A stretch of DNA of 8,759 nucleotides, from contig NW_003314270.1 in the NCBI RefSeq assembly GCF_000143415.4, forward strand, positions 1,029,783 to 1,038,541. Direction: 5' to 3'. Of this stretch, positions 1 through 8,419 are shown one piece after another. Positions within the stretch are counted from its first letter, which is position 1. Each line of letters opens with the position of its first letter. The DNA is from Selaginella moellendorffii. Taxonomy: Eukaryota > Plantae > Lycopodiophyta. Both the position numbers and the translations under genes were made by a program. Below the pieces are notes generated by a model. It saw nothing but the letters and a program-made list of their open reading frames with translations. It was not told the origin of the DNA and searched no databases.

Positions 1-443
1 GCCCTTATACTGGAATTATAGAGCACCACAATAAGTAACCACTAGTGGGATGCACAAGACTTCAGTATAAGACCCATAACTAAGATGCTCTTATGTGCTA
101 GAATCTAGTGTTCAAAGAGGGTAACTACTGAAACTAAAAGTGATAGTGAAGAAAACAAGGGGAAGAAAGCTAAAAATAAAAGTCAAAAGGAAAGAGGATA
201 AAAGTAAAAAATGAGAGAGGAGTTTAAAGTTCAAAGACATAAGGAAAACACAGTGGGAAATGATCTAATTAAACTAAAGACTTTAGAAAGTTGTTGAAGC
301 CAAGGGACCTTAGACTTGTATAGTGATGTTAGAGAAGTCAAGTGTTGACGTAGTCCAATCCATGTTGAAGAAGGCAATTATATTGCATTGAACAACTTGG
401 ATCTCTAGCAATATGTTATCCTTAATGATTTTTAGGAAAAGAA

Positions 444-1010
444 ATCAAATATCATTTGTACCTTTTCCAGATGAGTTGCTTAGTTATTGTATATGCAAAA
501 TTTGTCAAGGTACACTATGATAAGTTTGCCAAGGTACGGCTCAAAGATCTTGTTCATGAGTCGTTTAAATGTTGCTAGTGCATTTGTGAGCTAAAATGGC
601 ATCACTCTATATACAAAAGTTCCCCAAGGAGTGGTGAATATTGTTTTCAGTTGATCCTCCTCTTTGATTCAAACTTAAAAATATTCGAAGTATCCATCAT
701 AAAAAGTATACCATTCATGTCTTGCTACTGCATTAAGGATCTCGTCTATGAATGGAATGGGATGATGACCACCTCATGTAACATCATTCAACTTTTTATA
801 GTTGATGCACACTTTCTATTTCCTTCTTTTTTTTGGTGTTACTATAGATGACACCCAATTTGAATTCTCCACTTCAAATATAAAGTCAGCTTTGATCAAC
901 TTTATCAACTCAATATAGTATATATCAAACTTTAGAGGTCCCAACTTATATGGCTTTGAGCTATTAACTTTGCTCCTTGCTTGATTAGAATCTCATGTTT
1001 CACTATATCC
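444..1010 (-). pseudogene. pol: Gypsy reverse transcriptase, disrupted
   Basis: Minus translation gives VKHEILIKQGAKLIAQ/KPYKLGP, then from 899 LIKADFIFEVENSNWVSSIVTPKKRRK*KVCINYKKLNDVT*GGHHPIPFIDEILNAVARHEWYTFYDGYFEYF*V*IKEEDQLKTIFTTPWGTFVYRVMPF*LTNALATFKRLMNKIFEPYLGKLIIVYLDKFCIY. The catalytic YLDD reads YLDK at 512-501. The DGYxxY and FTTPWGTF motifs resemble non-chromovirus (Athila/Tat/Phygy-type) RTs. Confidence 0.95.
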
Positions 1011-1281: not shown

Positions 1282-1620
1282 TCATATGATTATTTCACCT
1301 ACCTCCCAATCATTATTGGCACGGACCTTACACAACCAAGGACATCCAAGGATCATATGATAACCATCACTACTCTTTAGATGAATAACATGCATGTCAA
1401 TTATGGTGGATATCCCACAAACTATTATGGGAAGATTAGTGTTCACCCGATGATCACTTGCTACTTTGATCTTCCACCTCAAGGGTTGAGTGCATTTCAA
1501 CCTAAGTTTCTCTATCAACTAGTCACTTATGACCCATATGGCTGCACCACCATCCACTAGTATCCTTTGTATTAAAATCCCTTTAAGAATAGCTTCCACT
1601 ATTGGAGCATCCATGTTAAC
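1282..1620 (-). pseudogene. pol: Retropepsin-like aspartic protease of the Gypsy element
   Basis: APIVEAILKGILIQRILVDGGAAIWVISD*LIEKL has the active-site DGG at 1554-1546. It is in frame with ORF 1282..1518, which contains the C-terminal YHMILGCPWL (ILGxPWL) motif. Just upstream lies a pre-protease ISDLSEFCANITIAQLLSKC segment. Confidence 0.9.
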
Positions 1621-1968
1621 CTCAATAATAAGAGTTTACACTCCATGTGCCTGTTTATCTGTTACCTTTCTCTCTCACTCTTGTACTGATTCCTTGATAA
1701 ATCTCTTTTTGCAATCTTGTGCATTTGGAGAGGAGTTGAGCAATAGTAATGTTTGCACAAAATTCACTTAAATCACTTATGATGACTCCTTTTGGCCTTT
1801 ATTAATCTTCATATCCTGAATCCCAAACTTTCAATGAGGCCATATCACTCTATCCTGGTTTTTCTTAGTAAAGCAGGCTTCTATTGGATTCGATTATAAT
1901 TGCTCTCTTTGAGGCCTATTTACAACAAGCACATCTTGATCTTCAAAATAAAAATCTTTGCCATTATC

Positions 1969-2141
1969 NNNNNNNNNNNNNNNNNNNNNNNNNNNNNNNN
2001 NNNNNNNNNNNNNNNNNNNNNNNNNNNNNNNNNNNNNNNNNNNNNNNNNNNNNNNNNNNNNNNNNNNNNNNNNNNNNNNNNNNNNNNNNNNNNNNNNNNN
2101 NNNNNNNNNNNNNNNNNNNNNNNNNNNNNNNNNNNNNNNNN
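1969..2141. other. N-gap (173 N) within the Gypsy gag-protease linker
   Basis: Run of N. Confidence 1.
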
Positions 2142-2148
2142 TTTTGCA

Positions 2149-2263
2149 GGCATTTGGGGAATAGTGTCTCAGGTTGTTTACAAGTGAAACAAACAACTAG
2201 ATTTACTACTTTTTGTTATTGGCATTCATTGTTATAATGCTTAGACTCCTTACAATTGTAGTA
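2149..2263 (-). pseudogene. gag: Two tandem gag CCHC zinc knuckles (degenerate)
   Basis: YYNCKESKHYNNEC (2263-2222, first C reads Y) and CFTCKQP-[frameshift]-HYSPN (2191-2149), both with CX2CX4HX4C-like spacing. Confidence 0.85.
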
Positions 2264-2775
2264 TATAACATTTACCTAATCACGTGAGGGTGGTGTTTGT
2301 GCATGATCCTTTAGTGGTTGACCATTGTAAAGTGGCTGCTATTAAGGAGTTTATGGTGGCCTTCTCTGAAGCAAATGCAACTTTAACTCACCAAAATCTA
2401 TAAGTAACTTTGCCAAGTTTTCCTTTAGTATTGATTGCAAGTGTCTTGCTACTAATGTAAGAGCTACTTCCTTCTTTTGGGCAAAGGATGAAGCTGCCAT
2501 TAGTCTAACTACTTCATCAAGTCATCCAAACTTTCTAGTTTTCCATGCTCCAAGTCATCAAGAAAGTTTGTGTTAATGCATCCCAATTCGCTCGTACATC
2601 CTTGTTTTGCCTATTATACCACTTCATTCTTGTATCTTCCATAAATGCTAAAAATAACTCCAACCATGTTGCAAGTGTTTGATTTTCATTTGAGAGGCAA
2701 GCTTTCTTAAAAGATCTAAAATATCTATTAGCATCCTCACTTTGAGATCCATAAAAAAACTAGGATCTTTGCCAT
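2264..2775 (-). pseudogene. gag: Gypsy gag (capsid N-terminal domain plus linker), with an apparent internal deletion
   Basis: ATG at 2775 gives MAKILVF/[frameshift in T run]YGSQSEDANRYFRSFKKACLSNENQTLATWLELFLAFMEDTRMKWYNRQNKDVRANWDALTQTFL, the typical FxG..ED..F..AC..WY..W..L..FL capsid pattern. The capsid C-terminal QxxxE..Y segment is not seen before the linker. Confidence 0.85.
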
Positions 2776-2872
2776 CTTCTCTACTCTAAGAAATTTTTAT
2801 AAATTTTTTATGATAAACTCTAAGTTATTATAACTTCTCATTACTAACTTGAGCTTATGAATTTTCTTCAAA

Positions 2873-3217
2873 GTTGTCCCTCATGATGTGTTTGATCTTA
2901 AAAAAATAAAACTCTTACTTTAATTCCTAGATATCTTTTGATAAAAGCATTAATCCTTGATTCTTGACCTTCCAACTTTCATTCATTTAATTTATAATTC
3001 ATTTGAAATTGTTTACAGCAACCATATCCTTAACTCCTAATGCTTTTGTTTCCTTTAATCCTTGAATCAAAGCCACATGCTCAACTTAGTTGCAAGTGTG
3101 GGTATTTGTAGCAGCTTTTCTAATGTGTGTTTTGTTGCCTTTTAGATCAATGATAACAATTATAATGCTAGCTACTTTCTTCTTCAACTTGAATTCTTTA
3201 TCAAAGTTCACTTGCTA
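2873..3217 (-). pseudogene. Archaeal/cellular-type RNase HI domain (aRH, RVT_3-like), degenerate
   Basis: Minus translation gives *QVNFDKEFKLKKKVASIIIVIIDLKGNKTHIRKAATNTHTCN*VEHVALIQGLKETKALGVKDMVAVNNFK*IIN*MNESWKVKNQGLMLLSKDI*ELKVRVLF/FKIKHIMRDN. This matches the FDG...TxNxAE..ALI.GL..A..LG...GDS..Q..G.WKVKN..L...HIxR layout. D is at 3202-3200, E at 3082-3080, the third acidic site reads N at 3010-3008, and WKVKN is at 2974-2960. Confidence 0.85.
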
Positions 3218-3241
3218 CATTAGCAATTACAATCAAACCTT

Positions 3242-3616
3242 TCATAAGTTATACAAAATAAGGATTTTAAAATTGCCCATAGATTGTAAGAGTCCCAAAG
3301 GAAAGGATGAATCTATCATGAGATTATAAAGTAAATCACTATTATAGCAACATGCATCCTCAAATATGACTTTGTTAAAAGGATGCCAGATTTGTAACAA
3401 AGTTTTTCTCACTTCACAATGTTTTATAAAAATGCTAGCAATGGCTAAAAGAATTTCAAAGTCAAATTCTCTAAATCCCCAATCTTGAATAATGGTAATT
3501 GAATTATGAAGTGTAAAGTGATGAGGAACTTGAAAAAAAGACTTCAATATATGATTTTGAATAGGTAAAGGCAATAGAAAGAACTTATTCCAAAATCTCT
3601 CATCATTATTACTCAT
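3242..3616 (-). CDS. 124-aa ORF of unknown function, in frame with the downstream aRH domain (probable N-terminal part of one extra protein of about 250 aa)
   Basis: This is the longest gap-free ORF in the track. The same frame continues past its TGA as KV*L*LLM*QVNFD into the RNase H. Confidence 0.55.
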   Translation of the reverse strand: MSNNDERFWNKFFLLPLPIQNHILKSFFQVPHHFTLHNSITIIQDWGFREFDFEILLAIASIFIKHCEVRKTLLQIWHPFNKVIFEDACCYNSDLLYNLMIDSSFPLGLLQSMGNFKILILYNL

Positions 3617-3719
3617 ATGCCTAGTCTACATCTTCAATAAAGATATTTAATAGTGTATCACTATTTTGAATATCTTCTTCACAAACATAAGACTCTATTC
3701 CCCACTACTCATATGCATC

Positions 3720-4270
3720 NNNNNNNNNNNNNNNNNNNNNNNNNNNNNNNNNNNNNNNNNNNNNNNNNNNNNNNNNNNNNNNNNNNNNNNNNNNNNNNNN
3801 NNNNNNNNNNNNNNNNNNNNNNNNNNNNNNNNNNNNNNNNNNNNNNNNNNNNNNNNNNNNNNNNNNNNNNNNNNNNNNNNNNNNNNNNNNNNNNNNNNNN
3901 NNNNNNNNNNNNNNNNNNNNNNNNNNNNNNNNNNNNNNNNNNNNNNNNNNNNNNNNNNNNNNNNNNNNNNNNNNNNNNNNNNNNNNNNNNNNNNNNNNNN
4001 NNNNNNNNNNNNNNNNNNNNNNNNNNNNNNNNNNNNNNNNNNNNNNNNNNNNNNNNNNNNNNNNNNNNNNNNNNNNNNNNNNNNNNNNNNNNNNNNNNNN
4101 NNNNNNNNNNNNNNNNNNNNNNNNNNNNNNNNNNNNNNNNNNNNNNNNNNNNNNNNNNNNNNNNNNNNNNNNNNNNNNNNNNNNNNNNNNNNNNNNNNNN
4201 NNNNNNNNNNNNNNNNNNNNNNNNNNNNNNNNNNNNNNNNNNNNNNNNNNNNNNNNNNNNNNNNNNNNNN
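3720..4270. other. N-gap (551 N) upstream of the extra aRH ORF
   Basis: Run of N. Confidence 1.
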
Positions 4271-4318: not shown

Positions 4319-4360
4319 GCTCTAATGCCTTATGTCATGAGGGGCTCTTCCTTATATAGT
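4319..4360 (-). promoter_or_regulatory. LTR-type signals: TATA-like CTATATAAG and a possible degenerate tRNA-iMet primer binding site after a TGACA end
   Basis: The minus strand reads actatataaggaagagcccctcaTGACA-ta-AGGCATTAGAGC, a 9/12 match to TGGTATCAGAGC at 4330-4319. The TATA and PBS readings are partly incompatible because they are only ~20 bp apart. Confidence 0.35.
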
Positions 4361-4748: not shown

Positions 4749-5170
4749 TATGGCATTTTTGGCTGAAAAGTTTTCCTGTCACAATACACATCTTGGCATC
4801 CAACTTGACAGAAAATGAGATGGCTCCATTTGCCTACACCAAGCCAAGTATGTGGAGGACATCTATCAGAAATTTTCCATACACCACAGGTCTCTTGCAC
4901 CAACACCAATGTAGGTTTGAAACTTTCTAAGGATATGTCTCCTTTCACTGATCAAGAGAAGCTTGACATGGGCATCATCCCCTATGGGAAGCCTCATGTA
5001 TCTGGTCGCTTGCACACACCCAGATCTCATACTCTATAAGTGTGGTAAGATCTTATACTCTATAAGTGTGGTAAGGGAATTCCTAGACAAGCTTGTAAAC
5101 AATTTTTTTGGTACTTACTTGGTACTTCATCTTTTGGCCTTGCTATAAGTCACGAGCTTCCAGCTTCACA
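4749..5170 (+). mobile_element. pol: Ty1/Copia RT C-terminal fragment (plus strand), heavily frameshifted
   Basis: The pieced translation is MAFLAEKF..HLGIQLDRK*DGSICLHQAKYVEDIYQKF..TPM/VGLKLSKDMSPFTDQEKLDMGIIPY/GSLMYLVACTHPDL/YSISVV..KQFFWYLLGTSSFGL. It contains the Copia LGI, HQxxY, PY..GSLMYL..TRPD and RYLxGT motifs. Confidence 0.9.
5022..5075. repeat. Tandem duplication, 2 x 26 bp (AGATCTYATACTCTATAAGTGTGGTA)
   Basis: Copies at 5022-5047 and 5048-5073 differ at one base and are followed by AG. Confidence 0.95.
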
Positions 5171-5322: not shown

Positions 5323-7000
5323 CTACTCCCCCTGTGAGACTAGTCCGAGTTGTCATTGTAGTCATTCAAACTATTAGACTTCAATCATAGTCTTTGTGAG
5401 CAGATCCGCAACCATCATCATTGTGGAGATGTATCTCAGCCTAACTTATTCTCTCTCAATCCACTCCTTGATAAAGTAATGAAACATCTTAAAGTGTTTA
5501 TTTCTCCCATGATGCATTGGGTTCATGATGGACTGAAGACATGTTGTGTTGTCATTGTAGACATTTTGTAGCGCATATGATCATGGGATGAGATTTGGAT
5601 ATACTGTCACCGTGGATCCTTGGAACCTTGGGGGATAAATGGGGATAAAATAGCCACTAAGGGCTCTCTCATCAAGCAATTACCCCTTTTCCAGTTGGCT
5701 TAAGGGGAGAGAGATAAGGTGTGCTACACATTTAGTGGTACTTGCAACTCAGAACTGATATCTCAGAGTAGCCATTGAATCCATAAAGCTTTCTTAATAG
5801 CTTCCATATAATAGCATTTTACTTTGCTTCACAAATAGACAACACCACCATCCTTTGTTTCTAGCTGTGTCACGACACAACCACATTAGAGAATTTGAAC
5901 ATGTACCTGGTTGTTGATCTCCTATCATCCAAATCGCCAGCAAGATCAACATCTACTATTCCATATGGTATAATTGCACTTAATCCAATTTCTCCTCCTG
6001 CCATCCCCTTGAACTCGAGATAAAGCAATGAAGTTTGTCGTATGTAGTTAAAGATCTACTCTACTAAATACCAATGTCTCTTTCTAGGATTTTGCATGAA
6101 TTGGCACACTCTAGAAACAGCTACACCTATGTCTAATCTACTTGATATGGCTAAATACATCAATGCTCTAACCATGTTTTGATATGGTAGCTTAACCATC
6201 TCCTTCTTGTTCCCCTCGGAATGTGGTTGATCTACTTTGGAGGGCTTGTTGAATTAGAGTGCTAGAGTTAAAGCTGGGCATGCAATTAAGAAACCATCAT
6301 ATTCCTTGATAAGATTTGAGATATACTTATATTGATGGACCTTTAGAACTTGATTTTTCCGATCATGCACAATTTGGAAGCCCAAACAAAAGGAAATTTT
6401 ACCAAAATCTATCATTTGAAGTTGTTTAGAGAGTTGTTATTTAAGCCATTTAAGATTTGTTGTCATTTCAGCCATGATGAGATGTGAATATAAACATACA
6501 TGAGAATAATCAAGTCATCACGAAAACAATAATATAGATCCCAATTTGCTTTTGCATAAGAGAAAACAAAAAATTAGAAAAAACTTTTGCAAAGTATTAT
6601 ACCAGATCCTTGGTGGCTGTTTTAATCTATAAATACATCATTGGAATTTGCACATATAGCACTCTTTCCCTTAGATCTCAAAATCTGAAGGTTGTTGCAT
6701 ACACATTGGTTCCTCCAACTTGCCATTGAGAAGTGCATTCTTGATGTCCATCTGCTCAACCTTAAGGTTTAAGTGATTAGCAATTGCAAGAACAAAATAA
6801 ATATAAATCATATTAACTACAAGTGAAAAAATCTCACTACAATCAATTCTAGCTTGCTGTATATATCCTTTTGTGATTAACCTTGCCTTGTACTGATCAT
6901 GTCTCCTTATATTTTATATTGTGAATCCATTTACACTATATAATTGAAGCCTTGCAAGGAACCTCTTGTGGTGAAATGAGTGTCCAGGAATGTTAGCTGC
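5323..7000 (-). mobile_element. pol: Degenerate Ty1/Copia pol (RT plus RNase H), 5'-truncated at the start of RT
   Basis: Motifs in order: SWTLISP, CKW (6935-6927), YKARL (6892-6878), QMDIKNA (6754-6734), YRLKQ (6631-6617), degraded YV[DD], LPYQNMVRALMYL, HW, DLAGDLDDRRST (5947-5912), KQRMVVLS.CEA, HGRNKH, ADLLTK (5409-5392), then LGLVSQGE* with the stop at 5325-5323. Confidence 0.95.
5603..5757. mobile_element. 151-bp insertion interrupting the Copia RNase H, flanked by ACTG direct repeats
   Basis: Removing it rejoins WLL*DIS to ISKSHP on the minus strand. ACTG lies at 5603-5606 and 5754-5757. The insert begins TGTCAC at 5605 and holds a GGGGATAAA tandem at 5631-5649. Confidence 0.75.
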
Positions 7001-7233: not shown

Positions 7234-8330
7234 ATGATGATTGACCAAGTTGAACGTTAGTTACCTATTGTCAATGGTGGTGTTGATGATGGTGCCAATG
7301 GAGTTGCGGAGGTTTGAATTATTCAGGATATTGTTCAAGAGTTAATCAAAATCAACAAGAGATGCAAGACGATATGTATGGCATGATGGATACCATGCGT
7401 GAGCATGTTGAGGCACTCAAGGCTGGACATAGTGGCACTCCAAGTAAGCCTTCCTTAGTAGATAGACTCAAGATTCTAACTTTTTTTAGTGATAGTGGTG
7501 TGGATGAGTGTTTTGTTTAACTAGCCAATGTGGAGAAGTTCTTAGTTACTAGAGGAACTCCAAATGCAAAGGCTTTAGTGGCTATTCCAATGGTTTTGTG
7601 AAATATGAGTCTTTAGTGGTGGAATTGGCTTAAGGAGTCTTAATGTTTACCATGAACGAGTTTGAGGTTGCTTTTCACTTATATTTTACCCCTCACTATG
7701 ATGTGGAGAATTCTTATATAGAATTTTGACATTTTCAGCAAGGGAAATTGATGCTCGAGGAATATATTGAGAATTTTATTCACTTGATTAGCTAAGTTCC
7801 AATGAAGGATTTAGATCAAAACAAATCTTACTTCATTGATGGCCTTCAAAGTGAGAGCATATGGCAACACTTTGTCATTCTCAGCTTACAAAGAGTTTAG
7901 AGGAGCTCATTTGATTGCCCTAAAGGCTGAGAGAGGAGGAAGAAGAAAATTTTTGGCACAACATTCAAGAGATTATAGCTCCTCTAAGTGAGTGAAGTGA
8001 GAATGTGTACAAAACAAAACAATCCCTCCATTTAGACCACTTTTGTCCATGCAACAGACCGAGATTGACACAAGCTTTGACTTTTTTATGCAGCTTGTCG
8101 ACTTAACAATGACAAGAACAAATCTTGCAAGCATTTGAGGAGTCCTTTTGTCAAGAATTGTCGTGATGATCACTGTGAACACAAGAATGGGAACAAGCAT
8201 CATAAACTAAAGTCTATAGTGACTACTTTAGATCCAAAGGGGTTAAAGAAGTAAAAGTTTTTTGTGAAGAATTATAAACAAGGTTGTTATCATTGTGGTG
8301 ACTTTGGACAATACAAGGTTAATTGTCCAT
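7234..8330 (+). pseudogene. gag: Second Ty3/Gypsy gag (plus strand) with one CCHC knuckle, disrupted
   Basis: Translation gives DRLKILTFFSDSGVDECFV*LANVEKFL..WWNWL../NEFEVAFHLYF..HFQQGKLMLEEYIENF..YFIDGLQ../SLEELI..ALKAE, then the knuckle CYHCGDFGQYKVNCP at 8285-8329 (H reads Q). Confidence 0.9.
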
Positions 8331-8419
8331 AGTTGAAGAGTAAGTAGCAGGGTAAAAAGAATGGCTAATCTTTTACTGATGGTAAGTTTAATACTAAAAA
8401 GGTGCAAATTTTACAGCGT

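Follow-up and report, generated by a model that had tools for sequence, protein, structure and literature searches.

The window, that is, the whole stretch of 8,759 nucleotides analysed here from Selaginella moellendorffii (contig NW_003314270.1), probably holds a decayed Ty3/gypsy LTR retrotransposon of the Tat branch with the layout known as structure #4 or 'pre-capsid'. Read along the minus strand, the order is an open stretch of 127 codons, an archaeal-type RNase H (aRH) domain, a spacer, gag, an N gap, the protease (PR) and the RT (Table 1). An earlier note on this DNA had already placed an aRH ORF and gag-PR-RT in this order on one strand, and this was borne out by the HMM and tblastn searches and by the native start of gag. 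The same note took the arrangement for an undescribed architecture. However, the aRH-gag order was catalogued in 2023 as structure #4 and is now also called 'pre-capsid' (PMC10508981; PMC13468544), and the claim of novelty therefore fails: the note had itself named 'an already catalogued lineage with this order' as evidence against it, and such a lineage exists. Since structure #4 has been published, the window element can at most be counted as a further, decayed example of a type already known. The independent RNase H capture and the role on R-loops that the note had also proposed find no support here.

Table 1. Features of the element in the window, listed in their minus-strand order
Feature	Position	Strand	Remarks
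Assembly gap upstream of the aRH ORF	3720..4270	n/a	551 N
N-terminal part of the aRH ORF	3245..3625	-	127 codons without a stop; ATG 3616; frame shared with the RNase H domain
Link from the open stretch to the RNase H domain	3215..3244	-	ten codons, four in-frame stops
Archaeal-type RNase H (RVT_3-like), decayed	2858..3214	-	two local HMMs; five in-frame stops, 2/4 catalytic acids now N
A/T-rich spacer, end of the aRH ORF to the gag ATG	2776..2857	-	82 nt; sequence and repeat search
gag	2142..2775	-	ATG 2775; frameshifts and many stops; matches to related loci
gag capsid-like region	2759-2538	-	
gag CCHC knuckles, two, decayed	about 2266-2225 and 2199-2158	-	
Assembly N gap between gag and protease	1969-2141		
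Retropepsin (protease)	1285..1635	-	RVP_2 at E 0.038 (Pfam); tblastn in related loci
Ty3/gypsy RT	234..992	-	read-through matches 54 loci

Tat elements with an archaeal-type aRH at several positions within pol were described by Ustyantsev et al. in 2015 (PMC4408406). In the survey of 92 plants by Biryukov & Ustyantsev (2023), the position of the aRH before gag was designated Tat structure #4, and the order aRH.GAG.PRo.gRT was recorded from four mosses and from a Selaginella species other than S. moellendorffii (PMC10508981). This structure accounts for 70.8% of the aRH-bearing Tat elements of S. tamariscina; in S. moellendorffii, the same domain-based survey reported 51 aRH-bearing elements, all of structure #2 (PMC10508981). 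Its members are Stam_3 from S. tamariscina (Tat C) and Cpur_2, Psch_2, Scan_2 and others from mosses (Tat B) (PMC10508981, PMC13468544). The name 'pre-capsid' was given to the layout by Prokopeva et al. (2026), who also noted that lycophytes display all major layouts (PMC13468544). The window resembles these elements in the order aRH.GAG.PRo.gRT, with the archaeal-type aRH in its own ORF before gag, and in having a lycophyte or bryophyte host. The likeness is one of domain order. The window copy is dead, and its LTRs, native RH and integrase lie outside the readable sequence.

The aRH domain is real and statistically secure. Two HMMs were run against all six frames of the window, with an X written at each stop. 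The first was made from 115 ORFs out of 120 prokaryotic loci, which had been fetched by a one-motif DNA pattern; ten of ten seed ORFs checked against Pfam carried RVT_3 (51-89 bits) plus RNase_H. This prokaryotic profile gave a single match in the window, ungapped from 3172 to 2867 (39.5 bits, E 1e-13). The second HMM was built from 61 fern Tat aRH domains and matched 3208-2864 over profile positions 9-124 (44.5 bits, E 4e-15). The top scores in 300 triplet-shuffled windows were just 1.4 and 3.3 bits for the two HMMs, and it is because the profile scores stand so far above the shuffles that the domain can be considered real. When the stop-free pieces of the domain and the 127-residue stretch were compared with Pfam, no match was obtained, and the pieces of 42 and 28 residues gave chance matches only among PDB sequences; individually, the stop-free pieces score nothing because they are too short. 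The HMM search in six frames found no second aRH in the window, the interval of about 290 nt between PR and RT included. A word search (A2) returned only fragments of fern structure #1 elements, and a stand-alone aRH ORF was absent among the 120 matches listed.

Across its 119 codons the domain contains five in-frame stops and no frameshift. Its alignment is uninterrupted, and the sequence is therefore intronless. Two residues of the DEDD core are retained, namely the first D (in FDK) and the E (in VEH). The second D has been replaced by N (VNNF), and the same is probably true for the last D (EENS). With a core that is no longer intact and with its in-frame stops, the aRH is a dead copy. It shares about 30% identity with the Tat aRHs of Adiantum across 115-118 residues. 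The first strand (FD..FK.K.K) matches the retroelement pattern FDGA[YF]K.K and is covered by the fern Tat profile, while the prokaryotic profile aligns the domain from position 22 only. The strand also lacks the 'GNPG' loop that is present in all prokaryotic cellular-type seeds. Judged by these sequence features, the aRH is of the retroelement kind.

The open stretch that precedes the domain is free of stops over 127 codons, compared with 3-4 stops per 100 codons in the adjoining decayed coding sequence. It shows no similarity to protease or RT, and no Pfam family was found at E<=1. There was no Atlas match, no homologue by word search, and no match by tblastn or blastp in the 80 related loci or in 120 listed Tat aRH proteins. 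Its AF2 model has a pLDDT of 52. At the start of the ORF, a 24-nt direct repeat was observed (3597-3620 and 3693-3716, 75% identical, 96 nt apart). The repeated sequence surrounds the ATG of the aRH ORF (CATATGAGT...), and a small local duplication may be its origin.

The junction of aRH and gag is located inside one gap-free piece of the contig (2142-3719) and is therefore no scaffolding join. From the end of the aRH domain to the gag ATG at 2775 there are about 90 nt. The last in-frame stops of the aRH ORF fall at 2830-2825, and the gag ATG follows about 50 nt on. In the spacer (2776-2857), the sequence and the repeat search revealed no LTR, PPT, target-site duplication or true poly(A); the spacer does contain short A-runs. 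The earlier note had described a stop-riddled RNase HI domain on the gag strand that ends about 100 bp before the ATG at 2775, with no LTR, PPT or target-site duplication in between. This observation holds, the domain scoring 39.5 and 44.5 bits against at most 3.3 bits in the shuffles. In the relatives, A/T-rich leaders are likewise found directly ahead of the gag ATG. When the 120 nt leading up to the gag ATG were aligned to the relatives, the result was not significant.

The first piece of gag matches 34 related loci with about 30% identity (E down to 3e-14); a word search with a gag piece found no homologue. In 33 of these 34 loci the gag ORF starts four to eight codons ahead of the matched region, and an in-frame stop lies just upstream. 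The N-termini of the relatives (MVIPVFRGSKGED..., MAFPNFYGKRYES...) can be aligned with MAKILVF/FYGSQSED... of the window. On this evidence, the ATG at 2775 is the native gag start of the family. As 33 of the 34 relatives show this start, gag in the window is not truncated, and the aRH takes the place that is leader in the relatives without replacing any part of gag. A native gag start beside the aRH also makes a genuine element architecture more likely than a random junction.

The protease was searched with HMMER, which gave 12 weak matches with no architecture stated; those that were scanned carry retropepsin families. Two of the 12 come from the fern Adiantum nelumboides. One match (P0001) was rejected as a low-complexity artefact, and another (P0011) led to loci without an aRH. 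With the protease alignment, 80 plant-like loci were retrieved from JGI metagenomes and all 80 were confirmed by tblastn, whereas viral contigs scanned with the same alignment yielded nothing. The read-through of the RT, which has six in-frame stops within the 186 codons of 992-435, is 45-55% identical to 54 related loci, the lowest E being 8e-58. The relatives have gag, PR and RT in the same linear arrangement and at similar spacing. Since both RT and gag find matches in many loci, the gag-PR-RT part is an ordinary member of a widespread family.

An aRH is present in 10 of the 80 related loci. In all ten it is located about 800 nt after the RT, between a degenerate native RH and the integrase (structure #1). 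None of the 80 metagenome loci carries an aRH before gag, and the remaining 70 are without any aRH. These fern-type structure #1 elements (L140, L158, L195 and others, as well as P0017 and others from Adiantum nelumboides) are the closest aRH carriers found. They share with the window the short gag N-terminus and the N-terminal strand pattern of the aRH, and are 42-53% identical in the RT and about 30% in the aRH. They differ in the place of the aRH, which in the window comes before gag. In the 160 residues before the aRH of L140, L158, L195 and L126, the native RH was seen to begin with '...NPSVG...GAVLLQKD'. By eye, we take this start to be the expected site of the first catalytic Asp of a Ty3/gypsy RH, which would be in line with published accounts of tether-like degeneration.

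RT trees, which contained no references for Tat A-L, Athila or chromoviruses, placed the window as sister to the aRH-bearing clade. The SH-aLRT value was 82 in the first tree, and the more careful tree gave a UFBoot of 91 and an SH-aLRT of 84. However, a grouping of the window RT with the aRH-less clade was not rejected by the AU test (p 0.38), and the constrained alternative of the quick tree scored higher. For these two reasons the RT placement is not claimed.

The leader between the 5' LTR and gag measures 1.2-1.8 kb in seven related elements with paired LTRs, which is long enough for an ORF of the size of the aRH ORF. By these leader lengths, the upstream N gap (3720-4270) would be the place of the PBS and of the 5' LTR end, and it probably hides both. 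The 3' LTR and the native RH would fall beyond the start of the window (base 1), as would any second aRH behind the native RH. Just past the upstream gap, a TATA-like CTATATAAGG is present at 4330-4340 (-) and is a candidate for part of the 5' LTR promoter.

In the leaders of aRH-less relatives (L129:7357-8629, L169:7419-8629, L151:7990-9210, L175:7278-8552, L203:3142-4962), two conserved coding segments were found, one present in 32 and the other in 29 loci out of the 80. One of the two terminates about 75 nt upstream of the gag ATG. Neither a Pfam family nor an aRH signal was detected in these segments, and they are not homologous to the 127-residue stretch of the window. They may constitute an undescribed pre-gag ORF at the position that the aRH ORF holds in the window.

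Base composition across the window is AT-rich (GC 0.30-0.38), with a strong depletion of CpG (observed/expected 0.08-0.19), and the element is probably an old, methylation-decayed copy. The density of stops per 100 codons is 4.2 in the aRH and 3.2 in the RT, and the observed/expected CpG ratio is 0.08-0.13 in both parts. This similarity suggests that the two are of one age. Every gene carries stops, gag is frameshifted, and Asn has taken the place of two catalytic Asp residues: the copy is dead.

In the structure #4 reading, the first ORF would be placed in the long leader from the 5' LTR to gag. Its product of some 250 residues (~250) would consist of an N-terminal part followed by the archaeal-type RNase H. 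After the stop of this ORF and about 50 nt, the native gag ATG, the protease and the RT would follow. From the literature it may be supposed that live elements make the aRH as a separate protein off the genomic RNA. The free RNase H and the RT complex would then cleave the RNA/DNA hybrids during reverse transcription. Leaky scanning or reinitiation might permit gag-pol to be translated behind the first ORF. The native RH beside the RT is reported to lack its catalytic core in all Tat structures that have an aRH (PMC10508981), and the separate aRH would presumably compensate for this loss. How the aRH works from a separate ORF is an open question to the authors of that survey (PMC10508981). A sense ORF in the leader before gag is also known from Ogre (Tat lineage IV); the extra ORF of Ogre, however, is reported to encode a plant mobile domain and a coiled coil instead of an RNase H (PMC4408406).

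Other origins for the aRH have to be weighed against structure #4. The aRH and the 127-codon stretch could be the 3' end of a 5'-truncated plant L1 LINE that was inserted by chance before gag in the same orientation. In plant L1 elements, an aRH of the same broad clade forms the last domain of the ORF (Smyshlyaev et al. 2013, cited in PMC4408406). The mosaic of TE fragments in the window and the short A-runs of the spacer would agree with such an insertion. So would a faint 'IW..N..IFE' in the open stretch, which by eye may resemble the sequence before the RNase H of LINEs. However, no LINE RT, zf-RVT, 3' UTR or poly(A) is detectable in the window, and a native gag start follows instead. In particular, Pfam at E<=1 detects neither RVT_1 nor zf-RVT in the 127 residues; 551 nt upstream of them are N. 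The distance of about 50 nt from the stops of the ORF to the gag ATG leaves almost no space for a 3' UTR and poly(A). The A/T-rich sequence is matched by native leaders at this place in the relatives, and a target-site duplication is lacking. Moreover, the first strand matches the Tat aRH pattern in a comparison with fern Tat aRHs and prokaryotic seeds, and the decay of the aRH resembles that of the RT. A LINE origin is thus considered unlikely.

A different view concerns the history of the layout. The aRH ORF could have been placed separately in the leader of a different Tat family of S. moellendorffii, together with a new 127-residue module, and not be inherited from the 'pre-capsid' elements of Tat B/C. 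We regard this as doubtful. If it were true, one more independent rearrangement would be added to the history of Tat. If a milder version is true, the pre-capsid lineage would be traced in S. moellendorffii for the first time, and structure #4 would predate the split of the two Selaginella species. A relic in S. moellendorffii would agree with a published view in which lycophytes originally possessed every Tat layout and later lost them differentially. It would also show that surveys requiring intact domains overlook extinct lineages. The addition would be a modest one only, as a separate aRH ORF before gag has been catalogued since 2023.

It is quite improbable that the aRH is a piece of pol from another Tat element (structure #1 or #2), moved ahead of gag in a single event of deletion, nesting or illegitimate recombination. 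Structure #1 relatives are indeed nearest to the window among the aRH carriers found, and rearranged TE fragments are common in the window. From seven structure #1 relatives, HMMs were built of the 160 residues that precede the aRH (native RH/tether) and of the 200 that follow it (integrase); neither found a match in the window. As no remnants of native RH/tether or integrase lie beside the aRH, the domain is not a mere piece of pol from a structure #1 element. For structure #2, the 51 elements reported in S. moellendorffii speak in favour of such a source (PMC10508981). The structure #2 element described in 2015 comes from the same host, belongs to Tat as well and has its archaeal-type aRH upstream of the RT, but there the aRH is situated within pol, in the interval between PR and RT (PMC4408406). 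The corresponding interval of the window is free of aRH. With its sole aRH upstream of gag and none between PR and RT, the window element is not structure #2. The open stretch, too, is unlike PR or RT. Such an origin would furthermore require that each breakpoint coincide exactly with an edge of the domain, and that the downstream breakpoint be no more than about 50 nt from an intact, native gag start.

A host gene for an archaeal-type RNase H is the least likely source of the aRH, whether through a processed pseudogene or a single capture that landed beside the element: plants do have cellular aRH genes, the host has been proposed in the literature as the source of the Tat aRH, and the domain is intronless where a host RNase H gene is expected to have introns, but the first strand shows the Tat pattern and not the 'GNPG' loop of the prokaryotic cellular-type seeds, poly(A) is absent, and the orientation and spacing match the published layout of the element.

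Around the structure #4 candidate, dead transposon fragments form a mosaic across the window, which is interrupted by two N gaps (1969-2141 and 3720-4270). A decayed Ty1/copia RT is present at 6257-6811 (-) and 5873-6199 (-), where two collinear RVT_2 matches were obtained (E 4e-6 and 0.015). Downstream on the same strand, more pieces resembling copia RT/RNase H can be recognized by eye. At 4815-5036 (+), a second copia-like pol fragment was noticed by eye, without a match in Pfam and opposite in orientation to 6199-6059. A decayed gag-like region, again seen by eye, extends over 7314-8340 (+) and contains a CCHC knuckle at about 8286-8330. Two pieces of this region had no match in Pfam; it probably belongs to a different Gypsy family. 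Finally, a tandem duplication in perfect register is found at 5022-5073, with a unit of 26 nt and an identity of 96%.
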